DNA of 64,000 nucleotides from Zancudomyces culisetae HAW-14-8. Taxonomy: Eukaryota > Fungi > Kickxellomycota. A model generated the notes under the pieces. That model made no database searches. It was not told the origin of the DNA and worked only from the letters and a program-made list of their open reading frames with translations. Shown one piece after another: positions 5,265 through 64,000 of the stretch (within the stretch, counting starts at the first letter, position 1; every line of letters begins with the position of its first letter). The stretch is taken from the NCBI GenBank assembly GCA_052426225.1, contig JBNJNM010000012.1, positions 1,426,001 through 1,490,000 on the forward strand. The letters are read 5' to 3'. The translations under genes were made by a program, and so were the position numbers.

Positions 5265-5335
5265 TGCGGTTGCCTGGAATCGAACCAAGGTCGACGCGGC
5301 CACAACGCGATGTACTGCCACTATACTACAACCGC
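5265..5335 (-). tRNA. tRNA-His(GTG), intronless
   Basis: Reverse complement GCGGTTG...TAGTATAGTGG...TCGCG-TTGTGGC-CGCGT...GGTTCGATTCC...CAACCGC-A; acceptor stem, A and B boxes present, T-runs downstream. Confidence 0.95.
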
Positions 5336-5364
5336 TTGATTTGTGACAGAATTTAATTTTTTGT

Positions 5365-5737
5365 TGTCGGTTTTACCCGACTTTACCGCCTTAACAAGTA
5401 TTTTGAAAGTTTATACTATAATCTAATAACTACCTGAAGACGGTAGGACCCAGATTCAATGGCTTAATGTGTTTATTTTTGATTATAAACTAAAGAAAAA
5501 AGATACTGAATTCAGTAGGTCAGATACTTAGCCTTATATCTGATCTCTCATATTTTAAATAAACTAACTATATTATAACTATATAAGAAACATTGATAAA
5601 ATTAATATAAAATTAATATAAAAATTAATAGAGATTTACACGGGAAAAACCTCATAGGTGAAAAACACCGTGTAAGTCTTTGCACATCACACGAAAGCAC
5701 CCGTGTGATGTACATCCTGTCGCTCATTGATGCGACA
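5365..5737 (-). mobile_element. Solo LTR-like unit A (373 bp)
   Basis: TGTCG...CGACA termini, flanking TTTGT duplication (5360-5364/5738-5742), ENE-like hairpin 5636-5675. Confidence 0.7.
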
Positions 5738-5739
5738 TT

Positions 5740-5984
5740 TGTCGTATAATTAGTAGCACCTTATTCTATGAAAACTTTTTCCCAATGGGTTTTTCCTCAT
5801 ACAACGTTTATTAGTTTATTATTAGTATATATATAGTATTTAAACAATCAGTGGCATACACCTACTGATTATTTAGTTAAGAATTGCAACAATATCATAA
5901 GGACATGGTTGCAATTGTCTTTCATAGCAGCTAATAGCTACACCACGTTGTAAACAACCAACGTGGAAAGTTAATCTTAGTACA
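5740..5984 (+). mobile_element. Solo LTR-like unit B, inverted orientation; right end uncertain
   Basis: Starts TGTCGTAT; ENE-like tatgaaaac-TTTTT-cccaatggg-TTTTT-cctcata on the plus strand (5767-5801); candidate end GTACA followed by TTTTT. Confidence 0.45.
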
Positions 5985-6070
5985 TTTTTCTACATATGAG
6001 TATAAAAATCATGTTGGAGAATCTAAATAAAAAATCATGAGTAGTTTAATAAAAATTCACTACAGTATTG

Positions 6071-6354
6071 TGTTGTAATTTTAGATTTCAGAAAATTTCT
6101 CAGGAAATTTCCGCAACTAAACCTACAAAAAGTTCTGCTAATAGAGGGGGATTGTTACTGGAATAAGTTTTACTTTATTTAACCAGTCAACCCTACCTTT
6201 TTAGCTTATATTTAATTTAGTTTTATGTATTTATTACTTCAATAAATGCAATAAAACTGGGTAAAATTACGCCCAACTCCTAAAATTTGGTGTGCAAAAC
6301 GACTAATTTTGGTCCAAAAATTAGTCTCTGATACCTTTCTGACACCCTTTGAAA
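6071..6354. mobile_element. Solo LTR-like unit C, degenerate right end
   Basis: Starts TGTTGTA; ATTG at 6067-6070 and 6355-6358; right terminus reads TGAAA rather than TGACA. Confidence 0.55.
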
Positions 6355-6356
6355 AT

Positions 6357-6758
6357 TGTGTTACGCTTCACTACCTATGTTTTTTTTTGGTTTTAGGTAG
6401 GTTTTTGCTCAAATCACAAATTTCAATTTTATAGAGTAAAATCAAGTATTTTAGAGCTAATTTGTATTTTATTTAATGAATAACTTTTAAAAATAAAAAG
6501 ATAAAACCACCAAACTTGTGGTGGGGTTACTAGTAATATACTAGTACCTGACTAGCTATTTTATTAGAACTTTATATAATAGAAACTTAAAATAAAACAA
6601 TTAAAACTGAATATTTCTCCAACATTTGAGTAATTTATTACCCAAGAACTCCCAGATTTCTTGCTCGAACACCCGAGATAACGGTGGTTATTCGGTGTTT
6701 GAGAAGCTGTATGCTGTTTATCTAATAGTTTAGCTTGGATAGAACTAAGCATACAACA
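6357..6758. mobile_element. Solo LTR-like unit D (about 400 bp)
   Basis: TGTG...GCATACAACA; internal hairpins; TSD only approximate (GTAT/GTTAT). Confidence 0.6.
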
Positions 6759-6764
6759 GTTATT

Positions 6765-7017
6765 TGTTGTGTTTGCCATGTTTAACGTCCCATTTAGTGT
6801 TTTTTACACCAAATAACACACGGGACGGGTCATTTTACTTACTTTTTACTATATGCTGCGAATTATTATATAGTACTTTGGATTTTGCAAAAGAGGACAT
6901 TTATTTAGTTAAACAAAAATTATAATTTTATACAATAAAATCTACAAAAAATCTAACTAAAAATTACAAAACACAATTAACCAATGGAAATGTTTCACCT
7001 ATTGTAGGCATACAACA
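6765..7017. mobile_element. Solo LTR-like unit E (253 bp)
   Basis: TGTTGTGT...ATACAACA; near-identical same-length copy at 7490-7742. Confidence 0.85.
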
Positions 7018-7021
7018 GTAT

Positions 7022-7482
7022 TGTTGTATAATTAAATTTTATTTATAATTATTTATTTTTTTCTTATTTATATATGTATAATATGTATCGTATAATTATT
7101 GTTATAATTATAAACTTAGTTGAAACTATTATAAACTTAATATAAACATCTGTTGTTGATCATAACTATTTATTTACTACTATAAAGCTTGTATGATAGA
7201 ATGATATTTATTTCCTTATGCAATAACTAACCCTTTAAATACTTTTCCTAGTATTATAAACATACTAATAACTAACTATTGAACTAATAATAACTAAATA
7301 TACTAAAACTGAAACAATTTAAATGAGTAATAAACTAATACTCTTGAAAAAACATCAATGAATCAGTTTCATTGAATACTAAAAAAACTAAAACTAAAAG
7401 TATATTAATAATTTAATTATTTCACTTGATGATAAACATATAATATTAGTTTATCACCAAGGGTTCATGTCACTATATGACA
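7022..7482. mobile_element. Solo LTR-like unit F (461 bp)
   Basis: TGTTGTATA...TATATGACA; GTAT on both flanks (7018-7021, 7483-7486). Confidence 0.75.
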
Positions 7483-7489
7483 GTATTTT

Positions 7490-7742
7490 TGTTGTGTGTT
7501 GCCATGTTTAACTTCCCATTTAGTGTTTTTTACACCAAATAACACACGGGACGGGTCATTTTACTTACTTTTTACTATATGCTGCGAATAATAATAGAAA
7601 ATTATGATTTTGCAAAAGAGGACATTTATTTAGTTAAACTAAAATTTCAATTTTATACAAAAAAATCTACAAAAAATCTAACTAAAAATTACAAAACACA
7701 ATTAACCAATGGAAATGTTTTGCCTATTGTAGGCATACAACA
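7490..7742. mobile_element. Solo LTR-like unit H (253 bp, same family as E)
   Basis: TGTTGTGT...ATACAACA; TTTT on both flanks. Confidence 0.85.
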
Positions 7743-7745
7743 TTT

Positions 7746-7978
7746 TGTCGTGTAGTGAAAATGCTTAAGCTCCTACTTGGTAACTTTCGCTACCAAGTAC
7801 TATACGGAACGGGTCAATTTCAATAATATATAAATTTATTATACTATTATTTATCTGTGGAAAAAGACAATTTATTAATTAATTCCATTCAAACATATTT
7901 ATACTATTCTATAAAATACATAAATATAACTAACCAATAAAATTGGGACAACTCTTCAGTATAGTTTACTATACGACA
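7746..7978. mobile_element. Solo LTR-like unit I (233 bp, diverged relative of E/H)
   Basis: Terminal inverted repeat TGTCGTGTAGTGAA / TTTACTATACGACA; shares acgggtca, aaagaca-type and taaccaat blocks with E/H. Confidence 0.8.
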
Positions 7979-7983
7979 TATTG

Positions 7984-8399
7984 TGTAATATTTAAAGTCA
8001 ATATTATTATACCCGTTATGGGTGCACAGTGTCAATACACTAGTTATTTTCTTTACGGAGGGTGTTTAGGTCCACCGTTACTACGAATAACTTAATTAGT
8101 GTAGACACTTGTTCTAAGTTAATTATTGTATATTCACTAATTTATACTCTAAAAACTATATATCTGAACTTGTATCTATATAACTATTAACCAAAAAAAT
8201 TCTCCTGTAAAAACAAAATGATAACGCGGACTTGTTATCAAGGAAGTAGGAAAAAACCCTCCTCAGGGAGAAAATCCAATCTTCCCGATAATTTAATACT
8301 AATAATAATAATAATAAAATAATAATATTATGACTAATCAAATAACTAGTTACCTATCCAATTCCTGACAAGGGGTTATCCATCAATTTCGATATGACA
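7984..8399 (-). mobile_element. Solo LTR-like unit J (416 bp)
   Basis: TGTAATAT...ATATGACA; ATTG on both flanks (7980-7983, 8400-8403); ENE-like hairpin 8242-8285. Confidence 0.8.
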
Positions 8400-8401
8400 A
8401 T

Positions 8402-8698
8402 TGTGGTAAAAATTGTTACTATGAACCTTTTTGCTTAATTGTAATTTTTACTATTCTTATACTTGTTATTGTATAAGGGTACTTTCAAAATAATATACTA
8501 GTATCTATTATGTTTAGATTTATTTATTGTAAAGGACAAAGAATTTTATAATACAGAATTAAACTTATTTAAATAAAACTAAAATATATTAAGAAATAAG
8601 TTGATAACGATTAGAACTACAACCTATCATATTCCCAAAAAACCACAAGGGGAAAAAATGGAATAGTCGGATTGTAATATCCAATAATTCATACAACA
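8402..8698 (-). mobile_element. Solo LTR-like unit K (297 bp)
   Basis: TGTGGTA...ATACAACA; GTAT right flank matches the reconstructed left flank; ENE-like hairpin 8630-8665. Confidence 0.8.
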
Positions 8699-8703
8699 GT
8701 ATT

Positions 8704-11049: not shown

Positions 11050-14000
11050 TAAATTAATAAGCATTAAACGAATTTTCAGTGTCTTCATTTCGATTAGCCA
11101 ACTGCTTTAGGTATTAAGGATGTATGCTATAATCCAAATAATGAGTGTTGTATTAAGCGCTTTGCGTTCTTTTCTTAAATTTTGACCACTAAAGTTTATC
11201 GCTTTAGCATAGTACATTATGAATAATACAAATCTATATTTGTATTTTGTTTTAAAAGATACTCTGCAAACTGTAATTCATTAACATTGAGATTTAATAA
11301 AAAATTTGACGAATTAGTTGTTTGAACTATATTTGAGATATTGTTTCATTTTAAGATTTAATGCCTATTGTCACGAATGACACTAGATACTATTGTTGCT
11401 CGAAAATATATTATTTAGGATAAGATAATATTTTATCGCTAAGGATTTCATAGCGAAAAAATATTACTTTATATATTCAATAAATATTACTAATAAAAAC
11501 ATGTACTAATATTATAACTAACTATTGTAAGATTAATGTTATAATTATAATTTTGGTTTTGTGTTAGTATCATTACCTAAGTAAATGATTAAAACAACAA
11601 AATGTTTCAATTAATTAAGTGTTTTGAATCAGTATTGTAACAATACTAATTCAAAATCTTTTCATGTCATATTCATGACACCTATAAACTGTATGTTATC
11701 ATTTATTTCGCTATAAATTTAATAAGGGCGCATCAAATTATTAATTGTTGTTTAATAAACAAAATTTCAGTTTTCAATAATTGAAGTAATTTGACATTAT
11801 AATGTATAATCAAATTATTACATTTTCTATTATTTTAAGAATTATTTAAATTTTATTTACTTGATAGGAAATTTAACAAAATGCAGTATATTAAGCATTG
11901 AATTTAACTGTTGCATGTTCGAATTTCAAATAATGATTAACCAGTATGAAATTTACTTAATTGGTTAAATACAGTTATCTGTTTGTACAGAGTTAAACTA
12001 TATTGTAAGCCCATCCTATTACTCAACATTACTAACTGAAAAATATTTAAAATTAATAGAATAAACTGGATGTTCAAATATAACCACGATACACGCAAAT
12101 GAAATTATCTTTTGACACTAGCTAAGTAACTATTTACATGTTACTTTTGCATTATAAAAAAATTATATTTTACTAATTAAAACTTATATAGAACACAGCG
12201 TAGACAGATCAGACTATGTCATTGGTAATAATCTTACAAAAAATATACAATGGTTTTTAGTGGTACTAGCATACTAGAGTAGCTAATAGTGACTCAAGTG
12301 ATATGACGTTAATCATTTAATACTTTTTACTAGTTAATTTCTACAATTAACTTTCGATTATAATTGCATATATAAAGTATAACGTTAGCAAGGGGTCTTG
12401 GCTAAATTTAAAATCTGTTAGCATTTTATAACAATATTAGTGTCTGATTCATATTTCAAGATATAATCTAGAGTATAATTTAACTATCCACTCACTATTA
12501 TGTTAATTTTAATTCAAATTTATATTGGAACTGGTTTATCATTTCTATTAACTTTTATTCTCAGCTTTTGAAATCAGCTAATGGGCAGACGATATAATTA
12601 AATTTGTAATACTTTATTTCAAGCAGTGAAATGGTGTATATTAACAGTAAAAGCGTCAAAAACATCAAATAAAGTATAGTTTTTTAGGCATAAAAGTGTG
12701 GGGGACAGGAGGAATTGCAATGTTGGTTAGCAACTATTTATCAATTGGATGGTTACTTTGAACAAGTACCTAGCACTTTGCTACAAATGGTGGTAAACCC
12801 GAATTTAACTATCTTTTAGATTTTTCCAGAACAAGAACCTCCGTCATGGATCTCCTTATAGTACAAAAATTCAAGAATACAAAAGACCAAAATAAATACA
12901 TTCAGAAATTAAAATAAGCTGAATATTTACCTTTTAAATTAATAATACTAAGAGCACGCTACTCCATGCTATCTTGTATAAAGTGTAATGATGGATGATT
13001 TATCAATAGATAATATATATTGAATCAATCGACACATCCAAATTGCAGAAAATACAACATAAATAAACAATAAGATTTAGGCTAGGTTACACCATATAAC
13101 TTTTGGCATCGTTCTTGTAAATTCAATTTTGTATTTTTATCCGCATTAAAGATGGTGACAAAAGCGTTAAAATTATGGGCTTTACCAGAGATAATAGTGC
13201 ATACATACACTTGTCATCATAAACACCAATCAGGCTTATTGATGCTGCGATTTTTGTTAACAATAATACAGCTTTTGTTTCCAAGTTTTAAAATATGGTT
13301 TTTTCTTAGTGGGTTTTTTGAAATACAATTTTCTTCAATATTACATTTAAAATCTTAGGCTATGCTATAATTTGAGTTGGGAAGCTTAGATGTAGTTAAC
13401 AATAACTCTACTTTTTATAATGTTAATAAAAAATCATATTTACAATAACAAACAAAATAGTAGTGAGAAAAAAAGGTAAATGTATATTAACATTCCCAAA
13501 CATTATTCTTTATATCCAAACTTTGCTGTTTTTAACAAACATCGCATAATAATACTAATTTTGAGAATATTTAAACTAGTGGCTTCTATTGTTACCGAAT
13601 TAATAAAGTAATTTTAAATACATTTTCTAATATTCATCTGACTAAAATAGTAAAATAAATATTCTGGTGAGATGCCTGACTTCATTTTTGTTTGTTCGGG
13701 ACCTATTTTATGTTAAGTAATCATCCATTCTTGTTAATTGTTAAATCTGGACTCTCACTCTACTAAATATACAGTTTGGTTTATATTTTGAATTAGTGAA
13801 TGTATGTACCACAATCACAACACAAATATTAATCTCGTGTAGTTTTTCTCTAGATTGGAAAAACAAAGATATAAAAAGACTGAACCAAATGAATGACAAG
13901 TTAATTATAATCATACACTTATGGAACCCCTTCTGAACAAGAAATATAAGTTTTATTCCTTACACCTCAGTTCGCTTGACATTAAATTCCAAACTTGATT

Positions 14001-61186: not shown

Positions 61187-61514
61187 TGTTGTAGAATCTA
61201 TAAAACTCTAATGTTTGTTTATTAATATCTTTTTATAAGTATGGTTTGTATATTTGCTTATTTGTTTAATACTATTATAACTTATTATTATATTATGTGA
61301 TTAAAAGATTACTTTATTCATTTTTGTTGAGGGCATTCTCCTATACCCTGAAATATCTTCGATAATAAAACTAAATGTTATCCTACTTAATGACTAAAAA
61401 TATAGATTGACAAAAACCACGAGGGGAAAAAGGTACAATCTCAGTTAACTATACTAATGCAATAAAACTCAATAATTTAAACTAAAAATAACTATCACGT
61501 ATTCTCATACAACA
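61187..61514 (-). mobile_element. Solo LTR-like unit downstream of tRNA-Leu (328 bp)
   Basis: TGTTGTAGAAT...ATTCTCATACAACA; TAAT on both flanks (61183-61186, 61515-61518); ENE-like core caaaaaccacgaggggaaaaaggt identical to that in unit L. Confidence 0.85.
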
Positions 61515-61570: not shown

Positions 61571-61652
61571 TGGTATCAGTGAGATTCGAACTCACGCCTC
61601 TTTCGAGACCGCAACTTGAGTGCGGCGCCTTAGACCGCTCGGCCATGATACC
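61571..61652 (-). tRNA. tRNA-Leu(CAA), intronless
   Basis: GGTATCATGGCCGAGCGGTCTAAGGCGCCGCA-CTCAAGT-TGCGG, long variable arm, GTTCGAATC, TGATACC-A; TTTT immediately 3'. Confidence 0.95.
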
Positions 61653-61654
61653 AA

Positions 61655-61727
61655 TGGGAGCTCCGAGGATTGAACTCGGGACCGTACGATCTTCAGTCGC
61701 ACGCTCTCCCAGCTGAGCTAAGCTCCC
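61655..61727 (-). tRNA. tRNA-Phe(GAA), intronless
   Basis: GGGAGCTTAGCTCAGCTGGGAGAGCGTGCGA-CTGAAGA-TCGTA...GAGTTCAATCCTC-GGAGCTCCC-A. Confidence 0.95.
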
Positions 61728-61735
61728 ATATATTT

Positions 61736-62189
61736 TGTTAGCGAATTCCAGGTTCCACCGCTATTGTGTAAAAAATATATTTATTTGATAGAAAAACTAT
61801 ACTATGTACTAATGTTGTTAAGTTTTCATTATAGTAACTATAACTTTAATAAATAGACCAAACTTGTATTTTACGTGTTTATTTGATGATGTTTAAACTA
61901 TCTGAATAACTATCATATTTATACTTTTTTAAAACAACTATTAAACTTAAAACCTAAATATATTTTAAACTTAAAACTATACTAATTAAAATAATATTCT
62001 AGAATGTTGCTGTAGAAAAAATCCAGAAGGATAAAAAAAACTTGGCAACACATAATATACTAAATAACCTATAATAAATATTAACTTATATTAAGAGATA
62101 AACCTAAATATTAATAAATAGAAATAAATATGTAATTGGTAAGTTATTATTATATAATGTCTAGAGGTAGCTCTAGCCACTATATAACA
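61736..62189 (-). mobile_element. Solo LTR-like unit 1 (454 bp; youngest of the Phe stack)
   Basis: TGTTAGCG...TATATAACA, 8 bp from tRNA-Phe 5' end; ATTT on both flanks; ENE-like hairpin 62005-62050. Confidence 0.85.
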
Positions 62190-62192
62190 ATT

Positions 62193-62456
62193 TGTTAGAT
62201 TCAATTTATTATCGATTCTAACTGGTTCTACTAGAGGGGTGGTATTACTAGTCTGGGTTTAACCATTTTAACTAGTTACCACTTTCTAGTCATACATATA
62301 AATGGAACCGGAACATTTATATGGGTCAATATTTGACAATTTATTTAAGATTCAAAATAATAATTTCTTAATACTAAATTTTACTAGAAAAACTAATAAA
62401 ATCACTAACTATAAAATTAACCAATAGTATGCAAACATTCTATTTTGCATACAACA
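62193..62456. mobile_element. Solo LTR-like unit 2 (264 bp, E/H/I-related)
   Basis: TGTTAGAT...ATACAACA; TATT TSD after removing unit 1; gggtca and ttaaccaat blocks as in E/H/I. Confidence 0.8.
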
Positions 62457-62461
62457 TATTG

Positions 62462-62915
62462 TGTTAGCGATTTAGGTTCTTAACCACTATAAAGAATATA
62501 TTTACTATGTTAACTAATATATACTAAGTACTATTTTTAATCAAGTTTTCGCTATTTATGTTAAAGACTTTAGTAAATAGACCAAACTATGTTTATGTGA
62601 TTTATTTGATAACGCTACTACAAGAAAAATATGTAGTATTTAAAATAATATTTTATACTATAATAAACTTAACTATATACCTAAACTACTAATAAACCTA
62701 TAACTATTTTTTTTATATTTGTTCATGCCTAGAAAAAATCCGAATATGAAAAAAACTATGCATGAACCTAGAATTTATGAATAAACTAATAATATACTAT
62801 AACAGATCAAATATTATGATCTACAAAAAGTAATATAAAATTAATATAATAAAACCAATATTATTAGAAGGTAGATTATATAGTGACTAGAGGTGATCTG
62901 CGTCGCTATATAACA
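62462..62915 (-). mobile_element. Solo LTR-like unit 3 (454 bp, family of unit 1)
   Basis: TGTTAGCG...CGCTATATAACA; ATTG on both flanks; ENE-like hairpin 62721-62767. Confidence 0.85.
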
Positions 62916-62917
62916 AT

Positions 62918-63377
62918 TGTTAGCGAAACACAGGTTTACTTCCCTATTGATTTTTATATATTTATTTTGATAGAAATACTATACTAAGTACTATGTTTAA
63001 AATTGTTTTCACTATAGTAACTATGCTTAAATAAATAGACCAAACTTAATAAACTATATTTAATTGATAATGTAATACTAAATGAATATCTAGCCATATT
63101 TATACATTTTAAAAATGACTATTACAATATTCTGAAATAATTTTATACTAATTAATTAAAAATCCAATAAAATATATATTAAATTGAACTAGAGTGTTCC
63201 TGTAGAATTAATCCAGAATGATAAAAAAAACTAGGCAACACATAATATAATAAATAACCTATAATAAATAATATCTTATATTAAATGATAAACCTAAATA
63301 TTAATATAAAAGTATATGAATAACTGTTAAGTTAAAATTATATAATGACTAGAGGTAGCTCTAGCCACTATATAACA
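62918..63377 (-). mobile_element. Solo LTR-like unit 4 (460 bp, close relative of unit 1)
   Basis: TGTTAGCG...ctagaggtagctctagccactatataACA (same end as unit 1); ATAT TSD after reconstruction; ENE-like hairpin 63195-63240. Confidence 0.85.
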
Positions 63378-64000
63378 ATATTGTTAAATTTCGACCCTTT
63401 CTGCTAGTAGTCGTAGTTATTCGTTAATTCGTTGGTTTAAAATTTAATAGAAAAATTAATTATCTACTTGTTTTGTTCGAAACTCTAACTAACTATTAAG
63501 ACTTGTTTATTCTTTTGGTTATTATTCTTTATTTTTTATTGCTAAAAAGTGTTTTTCCTAAAAAGTTGTTCTTCCAAACTGTAAATAAAATTTTTATCTA
63601 TACTATTTTTTTTTCCAAATATTTTGTTATCTCAATTTTTTTGTGTTATCAATTACAATTTGGTTGAATGTAAATGAAAACCATAAGTAATTGTACTTCA
63701 ATCGGAAAAATACGCTTGATGTGTGTGTGTATGCCATCTTTATTTCATTTCGAAAATACTCACCAAATTCTAGAATAGAATTTGATTCGCTAATTTTATG
63801 CTAATAAAATGAGTAAAATTTTATAAAAATTTTTTGCATGAAAATTTTTCACAAATACTTATCAATCTGACTATCATACTTGTTTTGAAATTCTTCACCA
63901 TGCGCAGTGTGCTATGTTTTGGACTACTTCAGTGCTACTGTTTGACTACAGTAGTACGCGCGTAGTCCACGCGTAGTACCCTGCTTATCAATTATTAGCA

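Follow-up and report, generated by a model that had tools for sequence, protein, structure and literature searches.

Solo long terminal repeats stacked upstream of a tRNA gene pair in a harpellalean fungus: a probable record of successive tRNA-targeted insertions

The sequence considered here (the window) is a stretch of 64,000 nucleotides (nt) from Zancudomyces culisetae HAW-14-8, corresponding to positions 1426001–1490000 of contig C12 of the 27-Mb genome (G000). The host is a gut-symbiont fungus of the Harpellales (Kickxellomycotina), which agrees with the mention of early-diverging fungi in a reading of the window made from its letters alone (the original prediction). Near the right-hand end of the window, a tRNA-Phe gene is preceded by four complete solo long terminal repeats (LTRs) and a truncated fifth, arranged head to tail. 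This stack was very probably built by successive, independent integrations of Ty3/gypsy-type retrotransposons targeted to the tRNA gene, each since reduced to a solo LTR and with the newest copy beside the tRNA. The components of the locus are as follows.

61571–61652, minus strand: tRNA-Leu(CAA), the downstream member of the pair (ARAGORN; Infernal RF00005, 58.5 bits)
61655–61727, minus strand: tRNA-Phe(GAA), the target gene (ARAGORN; Infernal RF00005, 62.1 bits)
61728–61735: gap of 8 nt that separates the first LTR from tRNA +1; plus strand, ATATATTT (from the sequence)
61736–62189, minus strand: unit 1 (U1), solo LTR of family A1, 454 bp; spacer to U2 ATT
62193–62456, minus strand: U2, solo LTR of family B, 264 bp; spacer to U3 TATTG
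62462–62915, minus strand: U3, solo LTR of family A3, 454 bp; spacer to U4 AT
62918–63377, minus strand: U4, solo LTR of family A2, 460 bp; spacer to U5 ATAT
63382 to ~63655, minus strand: U5, truncated solo LTR of family C, ~273 of 419 nt left (BLAST against family C copies)

The two tRNA genes are only 2 nt apart, and the anchor of the stack, originally taken to be tRNA-Phe, is in fact a Phe–Leu pair. The coordinates and spacers predicted for the four complete units were reproduced, as was the start of a fifth at 63382. What had been noted as a mere start is an LTR that is 93% identical to other family C copies, has lost its distal end, and is without a verifiable duplication. All units read TGTTA...AACA on the plus strand, and the reading sense first given to them (TGT...ACA, or TGTTAGCG...AACA) proved to be antisense. 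The coding strand of the elements is the minus strand, which is also the tRNA strand, and the 3′ LTR end faces the tRNA. The sense of U2, and of family B, was taken solely from its co-orientation with family A, and that of family C from a primer-binding-like sequence, TGGTGATCC, that follows a copy on contig C9.

Two further features lie close to the stack. A family M solo LTR (61187–61514, minus strand, 328 bp) with a perfect TAAT duplication is located 56 bp downstream of tRNA-Leu, outside the stack; an Rfam search for an adjoining RNA polymerase III (Pol III) gene found none, and the LTR is an off-site or downstream insertion. On the other side, at C12:1493433–1493915 and 3.4 kb past the window end, a reverse transcriptase (RT) gene occurs in an open frame of 1293 amino acids on the minus strand. 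This gene is located just past U5 and may come from a full-length element that closes the stack at its distal end.

If the units are removed one by one from the tRNA side with an explicit peeling script, a perfect 4-bp target-site duplication appears at each step, in the order that had been predicted. The duplication of U1 is ATTT, with a right copy that takes in the first T of U2; that of U2 is TATT once U1 is removed; that of U3 is ATTG, with a right copy that takes in the TG of U4; and that of U4 is ATAT once U3 is removed. The ATATATTT stretch provides the tRNA-side copy of every duplication, with ATTT at 61732–61735. The claim that duplications overlap the first one or two bases of the neighbouring, earlier element holds for two of the four. 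Reconstructed insertion distances to tRNA +1 are 8, 7, 8, and 6 nt, with 6 nt for U5, and the distances given earlier are therefore correct by the tRNA boundaries that Infernal assigns. U1 is the newest unit in this order, while U5 is the oldest and most distal.

Since a perfect 4-bp match is expected by chance in ~2.7% of units (from LTR flanks genome-wide), four of four in the window stack is far beyond chance. Among annotated solo-type units, perfect immediate 4-bp duplications were found in 46 of 121, compared with 3.2 expected when left and right flanks were paired at random (5000 permutations, maximum 13), and the anticipated excess over shuffled flanks is thereby borne out. Local tests were used instead of stack-wide peeling, as the script is error-prone after the LTRs of full-length elements or where boundaries are imprecise; for families starting TGTTGT, unit boundaries are uncertain by 2–3 nt. 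In-stack spacers also carry a locus-specific motif, as repeated use of one target would produce. For instance, the spacers at C9_869873 read CGTG and then GTCG five times. These data bear on the view that the chain of duplications is a coincidence of AT-rich flanks, or that the stack is an assembly artefact of collapsed repeats. The spacers are indeed short and AT-rich, and the order of units is known from the assembly alone. Even so, the permutation result, the GC-containing chains such as the sixfold GTCG of C9_869873, and the recurrence of this architecture, both at numerous loci here and in an independent project's Smittium assembly, render such an origin exceedingly improbable.

One junction departs from the usual form. 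Where a family O LTR meets a tRNA-Ala gene (L025; C6:2246579–2249998), an AGAC duplication fits only if two extra bases (AG) are allowed between the LTR end and the right-hand copy. The extra bases may represent an unprocessed complementary DNA end or a small slippage.

The kinship of the units points away from a local origin. U1 has 98% identical copies elsewhere, some of which are LTRs of full-length elements; U3 has 97% identical copies on contigs C13 and C23; and the copies of U4 are 95–96% identical, with one of them located 9 nt upstream of a tRNA-Lys gene. A head-to-tail array in which three units come from superfamily A could also be accounted for if one LTR, or a few, had been duplicated in tandem on the spot or multiplied by unequal crossing-over, and tandem arrays sharing LTRs do occur elsewhere in the genome. 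However, U1, U3, and U4 are only 66–79% identical to each other, against 95–98% identity with their copies on other contigs; the families of U2 and U5 are unrelated; and every complete unit has a 4-bp duplication of its own. Local amplification is largely refuted on these grounds and is extremely unlikely to have built the array.

Paired copies flanking gag-pol were recovered, in support of the prediction that the units are LTRs. At least 41 genomic matches were found for family A and 35 for family B. Family A LTR pairs are ~4.9 kb apart and 98.0–99.8% identical, full copies are ~5.4 kb long, and the LTR ends are TGTTA...TAACA. The primer site, located 1 nt past the 5′ LTR, is an 18-nt perfect complement of tRNA-Ser(UGA) plus CCA. 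It is followed by a gag region with a CCHC knuckle, which contains stop codons in the copy read. An RT match (C12:514156–514641) lies between LTRs at 511420 and 516638. The integrase adjoins the 3′ LTR and has H2C2 zinc-binding, rve core, and GPY/F-type C-terminal domains, and a polypurine tract, AAGGGAGGAGG, stands directly before the 3′ LTR. The gene order of family A was drawn from the element ends plus the RT match, with a middle ~1.5 kb unread; RT precedes the integrase, and the order is therefore that of Ty3/gypsy elements. No chromodomain was seen in the integrase tail of the one copy of one family (A) that was looked at. By these sequence features, the units are LTRs of Ty3/gypsy-type (Metaviridae) retrotransposons.

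Full-length and isolated solo copies of the elements are also flanked by 4-bp duplications, including CAAC, GTTT, GAAT, ATAT, GTCG, and TTTT. At least 15 LTR families take part (A1–A5, B–O, and others). A full-length family A element is located 6 nt upstream of a tRNA-Ser(UGA) gene (L014; C9:535981–539435), and this tRNA is the same species whose 3′ end matches the element's primer site.

The relation to tRNA genes was surveyed in 51 merged segments (178 kb, from 60 loci of ~3.4 kb) together with the window. An LTR end was found 2–10 nt upstream of the tRNA 5′ end at 13 of 13 tRNA loci, although the sampled loci had been picked for family A or B LTRs and the figure is one of biased occupancy. 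The units had been predicted to be tied to tRNA 5′ ends, and the survey upholds this. The loci span ten amino-acid types.

tRNA loci with a proximal LTR in the window: Phe/Leu; His
tRNA loci with a proximal LTR elsewhere: Ser/Gly; Lys, three loci (two UUU and an Ala/Lys-CUU pair); Ile, two loci; Val; Leu/Ala; Tyr, two loci; Gly(UCC)

Only two cases are free of the bias of LTR-based selection. The first is the tRNA-His locus of the window. The second arises from a list of tRNA genes compiled regardless of LTRs, in which a family D LTR ends 8 nt before the tRNA at C6:1930674; cross-matching of tRNA and LTR coordinates in this way provides a lower bound only. With regard to orientation, the proximal unit is co-directional with the tRNA in 10 of 11 cases of known sense, and adjacent units are co-oriented in 52 of 56 pairs. 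The tRNA-His locus carries the second stack of the window, with the following features.

5265–5335, minus strand: tRNA-His
5342–8699, minus strand: stack upstream of tRNA-His (BLAST with an LTR library, plus reading of the sequence)
6071–6758: unit of family D
6765–7017: unit of family G
7022–7482: unit of family O
7490–7742: unit of family G
7746–7978: unit of family F, with more units in the stack

The first unit of this stack is 6 nt from the tRNA, and its spacers are built on a GTAT/TATTG motif.

That the newest unit stands next to the tRNA, as had been proposed, is supported by three independent lines of evidence. The first is an overlap test that sets a model in which the proximal unit is newer against one in which the distal unit is newer, with a perfect 4-bp match required. 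Among 23 spacers shorter than 4 nt, the duplication of the proximal unit reaches into the distal unit in 11, while the mirror model succeeds in none. Several of the 12 failures involve LTRs of full-length elements, or a left copy that was split by a still newer insertion.

The second line of evidence comes from segmental duplicates. Three pairs of nearby inverted duplications, 99.3–99.9% identical and each with a stack, occur at the following positions.

C9:535981–544613 versus 556291–564924
C12:1508436–1511697 versus 1539647–1542908
C13:1483858–1487121 versus 1500127–1503390

Two inverted copies of a tRNA-Tyr region, 99.3–99.8% identical, have the tRNA and the distal stack in common and differ at the slot adjoining the tRNA, where one carries a family E unit (GATA) and the other a family D unit (TTAA). 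The C9 duplicates are 99.9% identical; in one of them, a full-length family A element is accompanied on its tRNA side by a family C element that the other copy lacks. The C13 duplicates differ only proximal to their common stack. Of the three pairs, those on C9 and C12 include a visible tRNA, and the inverted duplicates may be the arms of large palindromes 12–30 kb apart. The tRNA-Ile loci C6_1702026 and C10_1456738 were considered as a further natural experiment and rejected; they have only the spacer TGTTGTTG and a family B unit in common, and are not segmental duplicates.

The third line of evidence is divergence, which had been expected to rise with distance from the tRNA. It was assessed from terminal branch lengths in per-family trees of copies, not from distance to a family consensus. 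Terminal branch length grows with tRNA distance in 53 concordant versus 30 discordant in-stack pairs (permutation p ~0.02), and in 87 versus 47 pairs if runs are extended by allowing one unannotated unit (p ~0.002). In the window stack, the branch lengths of U1 to U4 are 0.009, 0.030, 0.019, and 0.036.

A number of observations weigh against a strictly ordered series of tRNA-targeted insertions. The divergence gradient is modest and noisy, and a perfect duplication is kept in only ~40% of units. The tRNA-His stack is messier than that at tRNA-Phe, with perfect duplications only in part. At one tRNA-Tyr gene, the family E LTR opposes the tRNA direction, and four of the adjacent pairs flip in orientation. 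The family M LTR downstream of tRNA-Leu is an exception in position. The pair C12_964664/C10_1079392 breaks exactly at an LTR edge and has no tRNA, which suggests ectopic recombination, and was counted as ambiguous. The integrase is no closer to that of Ty3 (E 2e-17) than to that of foamy virus (E 1e-23), and the same tether as Ty3 cannot be assumed. Neither an integration event nor a Pol III start site or a contact between proteins was observed. To these may be added the selection of loci for family A or B, and the many stacks that reach the edge of the 3.4-kb loci before any tRNA appears. The record is a lossy one, with exceptions due to orientation flips, ectopic recombination, and truncation.

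The stacks in 3.4-kb loci without a visible tRNA could also be taken to mean that incoming elements are drawn to LTR ends already in place, or to the chromatin of repeats, with the tRNA gene as a seed or bystander. Insertions often cut 1–3 nt into the neighbouring LTR, and large repeat-rich islands exist in the genome, as this alternative would have it. On the other hand, first units are found at a fixed 2–10 nt from 13 tRNA loci with many anticodons, and isolated solo copies reside in unique DNA with no LTR beside them (C6_338987). In addition, the overlap asymmetry of 11 versus 0 shows that the distance is set from the tRNA side, and the units that arrived after segmental duplication entered only the slot between tRNA and stack. 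Attraction to LTRs or repeats is improbable in light of these observations, and targeting to the tRNA gene is preferred.

The proposed course of events builds on the element anatomy, 4-bp duplication, position, orientation bias, and polarity observed here. Each integration would involve a 4-bp staggered cut ~2–10 nt upstream of the mature tRNA 5′ end, with the element usually placed in the transcriptional direction of the tRNA. Recombination between its LTRs would then remove the body, leaving one LTR flanked by the duplication. With the site measured from the tRNA side, each new insertion would fall between the tRNA and the previous LTR, sometimes with a cut 1–3 nt inside the latter. Older copies would be displaced outward, yielding a head-to-tail array with chained, overlapping duplications. 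By analogy with Ty3, Tj1, and DGLT-A, the elements presumably reach the site through a tether between the Pol III initiation complex (TFIIIB or TFIIIC) and their integrase or another of their proteins, and the insertion site probably coincides with the Pol III start site or lies close to it. The array itself is a passive by-product of targeting and not a functional recorder.

Among known systems, Tj1 of Schizosaccharomyces japonicus shows the closest behaviour, followed by Ty3 and DGLT-A. Tj1 inserts 5–11 bp upstream of the mature 5′ ends of tRNA genes and so gives rise to clusters in which such genes and transposons are mixed; it is always co-directional with the Pol III gene, which was reported as unique (Guo, Singh and Levin 2015; PMC4600332). 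Relatives of Tj1 make 5-bp duplications (PMC10085805). Tj1 belongs to the self-priming Tf1/sushi group of chromoviruses, whereas the present elements carry a primer site for tRNA-Ser and duplicate 4 bp of target. The Tj1 lineage has a chromodomain at the integrase C-terminus, in contrast to the GPY/F-type domain alone that was read in one family A copy, which would place the latter outside Tf1/sushi. The host of Tj1 is an ascomycete, while the present host is a zoopagomycete in which at least 15 LTR families use the site. For Tj1, the literature searched contains no description of ordered stacks with chained duplications.

Ty3 of Saccharomyces cerevisiae integrates within a tightly confined stretch at the Pol III start site of tRNA genes and makes 5-bp duplications, and its solo LTRs (sigma) mark tRNA genes. 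It inserts about 15–19 bp from the mature tRNA end (PMC5006619), with TFIIIB as the tether (PMC5006619, PMC6101501), and the wild-type element does so in both orientations (PMC4600332). The elements described here resemble Ty3 in their Ty3/gypsy type, a tRNA-type primer site, and a narrow window of insertion at tRNA genes, but differ in the 4-bp duplication, the 2–10 nt site, and an integrase that is distant from that of Ty3; by these features, they fall outside the Ty3 lineage proper. DGLT-A of dictyostelids is found 10–33 bp upstream of tRNA genes and is tethered through the TFIIIC subunit Tfc4 (PMC5006619, PMC6101501). It too is of the Ty3/gypsy type, lacks a chromodomain, has a primer site of the TGG type, and persists largely as solo LTRs, with several families per genome (PMC5006619, PMC6101501). 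Unlike the present elements, DGLT-A inserts further from the tRNA and has an amoebozoan host; nesting of copies at a single tRNA gene has been noted in Dictyostelium (PMC5006619), and no chronology from chained duplications is described.

Reading order from transposons that interrupt or displace each other is established in REANNOTATE-type methods (PMC2672092). Those methods rely on insertions inside older bodies anywhere in a genome, whereas the units of the stacks abut at one anchored site; the units abut because the site is used repeatedly, and their overlapping duplications give the order. The original prediction also likened the stack to a CRISPR array in logic. The likeness stands as far as polar addition is concerned, as both grow at one end beside a fixed anchor and position encodes time. 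It does not extend to a functional array or readout, which nothing suggests: there are no repeats and spacers, no host acquisition machinery, and no sign of readout in the sequence. The resemblance is formal only.

In the literature searched, no tRNA-targeting elements were described for the Harpellales or other zygomycete fungi, and no paper was found in which insertion order was read from chained duplications at a tRNA-anchored site. Targeted integration so near to tRNA genes and in a fixed orientation is already known from Tj1 (PMC4600332); the novelty lies in the lineage of the host and in reading the order of a stack explicitly, and not in the mechanism. In sum, the original observation is confirmed and its interpretation supported; units random with respect to tRNA genes, a lack of paired copies around gag-pol, and duplications no commoner than in shuffled flanks were the outcomes that would have told against it, and the opposite was found each time.

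Tight association with tRNA genes is not confined to this genome. Zancudomyces culisetae, Smittium culicis, and S. mucronatum have integrases that are 46–67% identical. For example, S. culicis contig LSSN01000175.1 contains an integrase gene (49% identical) followed by a polypurine tract and an LTR at 11498–11823, which ends 6 nt before a co-directional tRNA-Met. A second S. culicis contig has LTR-like units from ~10 nt upstream of a tRNA-Asn/tRNA-Leu pair and, after a spacer of 2–4 nt, an LTR plus primer site in the opposite direction. Related elements are also present on Z. culisetae and S. mucronatum contigs L061, L064, L065, and L067, and no tRNA is found within those short contigs. The tRNA-targeting behaviour is therefore shared across the Harpellales.

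Taken jointly, these comparisons raise the possibility, offered tentatively and as less likely than its contrary, that a chromodomain-less Ty3/gypsy lineage specific to the Harpellales acquired Pol III start-site targeting independently, and that a guild of 15 or more LTR families now has this behaviour in common, possibly by way of a tether other than those of Ty3, Tj1, and DGLT-A. If so, a stratified stack would be found at nearly every tRNA gene, and family activity could be dated from these stacks genome-wide. The terminal LTR sequence, in some cases only 2 nt away, would also have become the de facto upstream and start-site region of tRNA genes, and Pol III initiation would have co-opted it or would at least be compatible with it.

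The findings extend precise tRNA-gene targeting by LTR retrotransposons to the Zoopagomycota (Harpellales: Zancudomyces and its Smittium relatives). They represent neither a new mechanism nor a sign of host function. Each tRNA locus is an ordered record of insertions, with the chained duplications as an internal check, and such stratigraphy over many tRNA loci could be used to order the activity of families, date segmental duplications, and compare strains. The stacks are also new material for studying how the Pol III complex is recognized by integrases, and what allows a tRNA gene to accommodate foreign DNA 2–10 nt from its 5′ end.

Regular spacing of elements was observed at several places in the genome. 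RT genes recur every 4866 or 4934 bp (C11:285769/290635/295501 and C12:936457/941391), a regularity that points to tandem elements with LTRs in common. Four occurrences of a family O LTR are spaced at intervals of 2379 bp (C12:1891537/1893916/1896295/1898674).

Many tRNA genes of the genome form tight same-strand pairs 1–6 nt apart, such as Phe–Leu, Ser–Gly, Ala–Lys, and Leu–Ala, among more. Their positions include the following.

C10:644242/644317
C21:1544206/1544280
C12:2075927/2076002
C6:1309458/1309537, and others

A Leu–Asn pair of the same kind occurs in Smittium culicis (L066, 4664–4835). These pairs look like two-tRNA transcription units. Among protein-coding genes, the window encodes two myosin-chitin synthases and a type-III glutamine synthetase, the latter 86% identical to that of Zancudomyces culisetae and ~62% identical to those of Smittium species.

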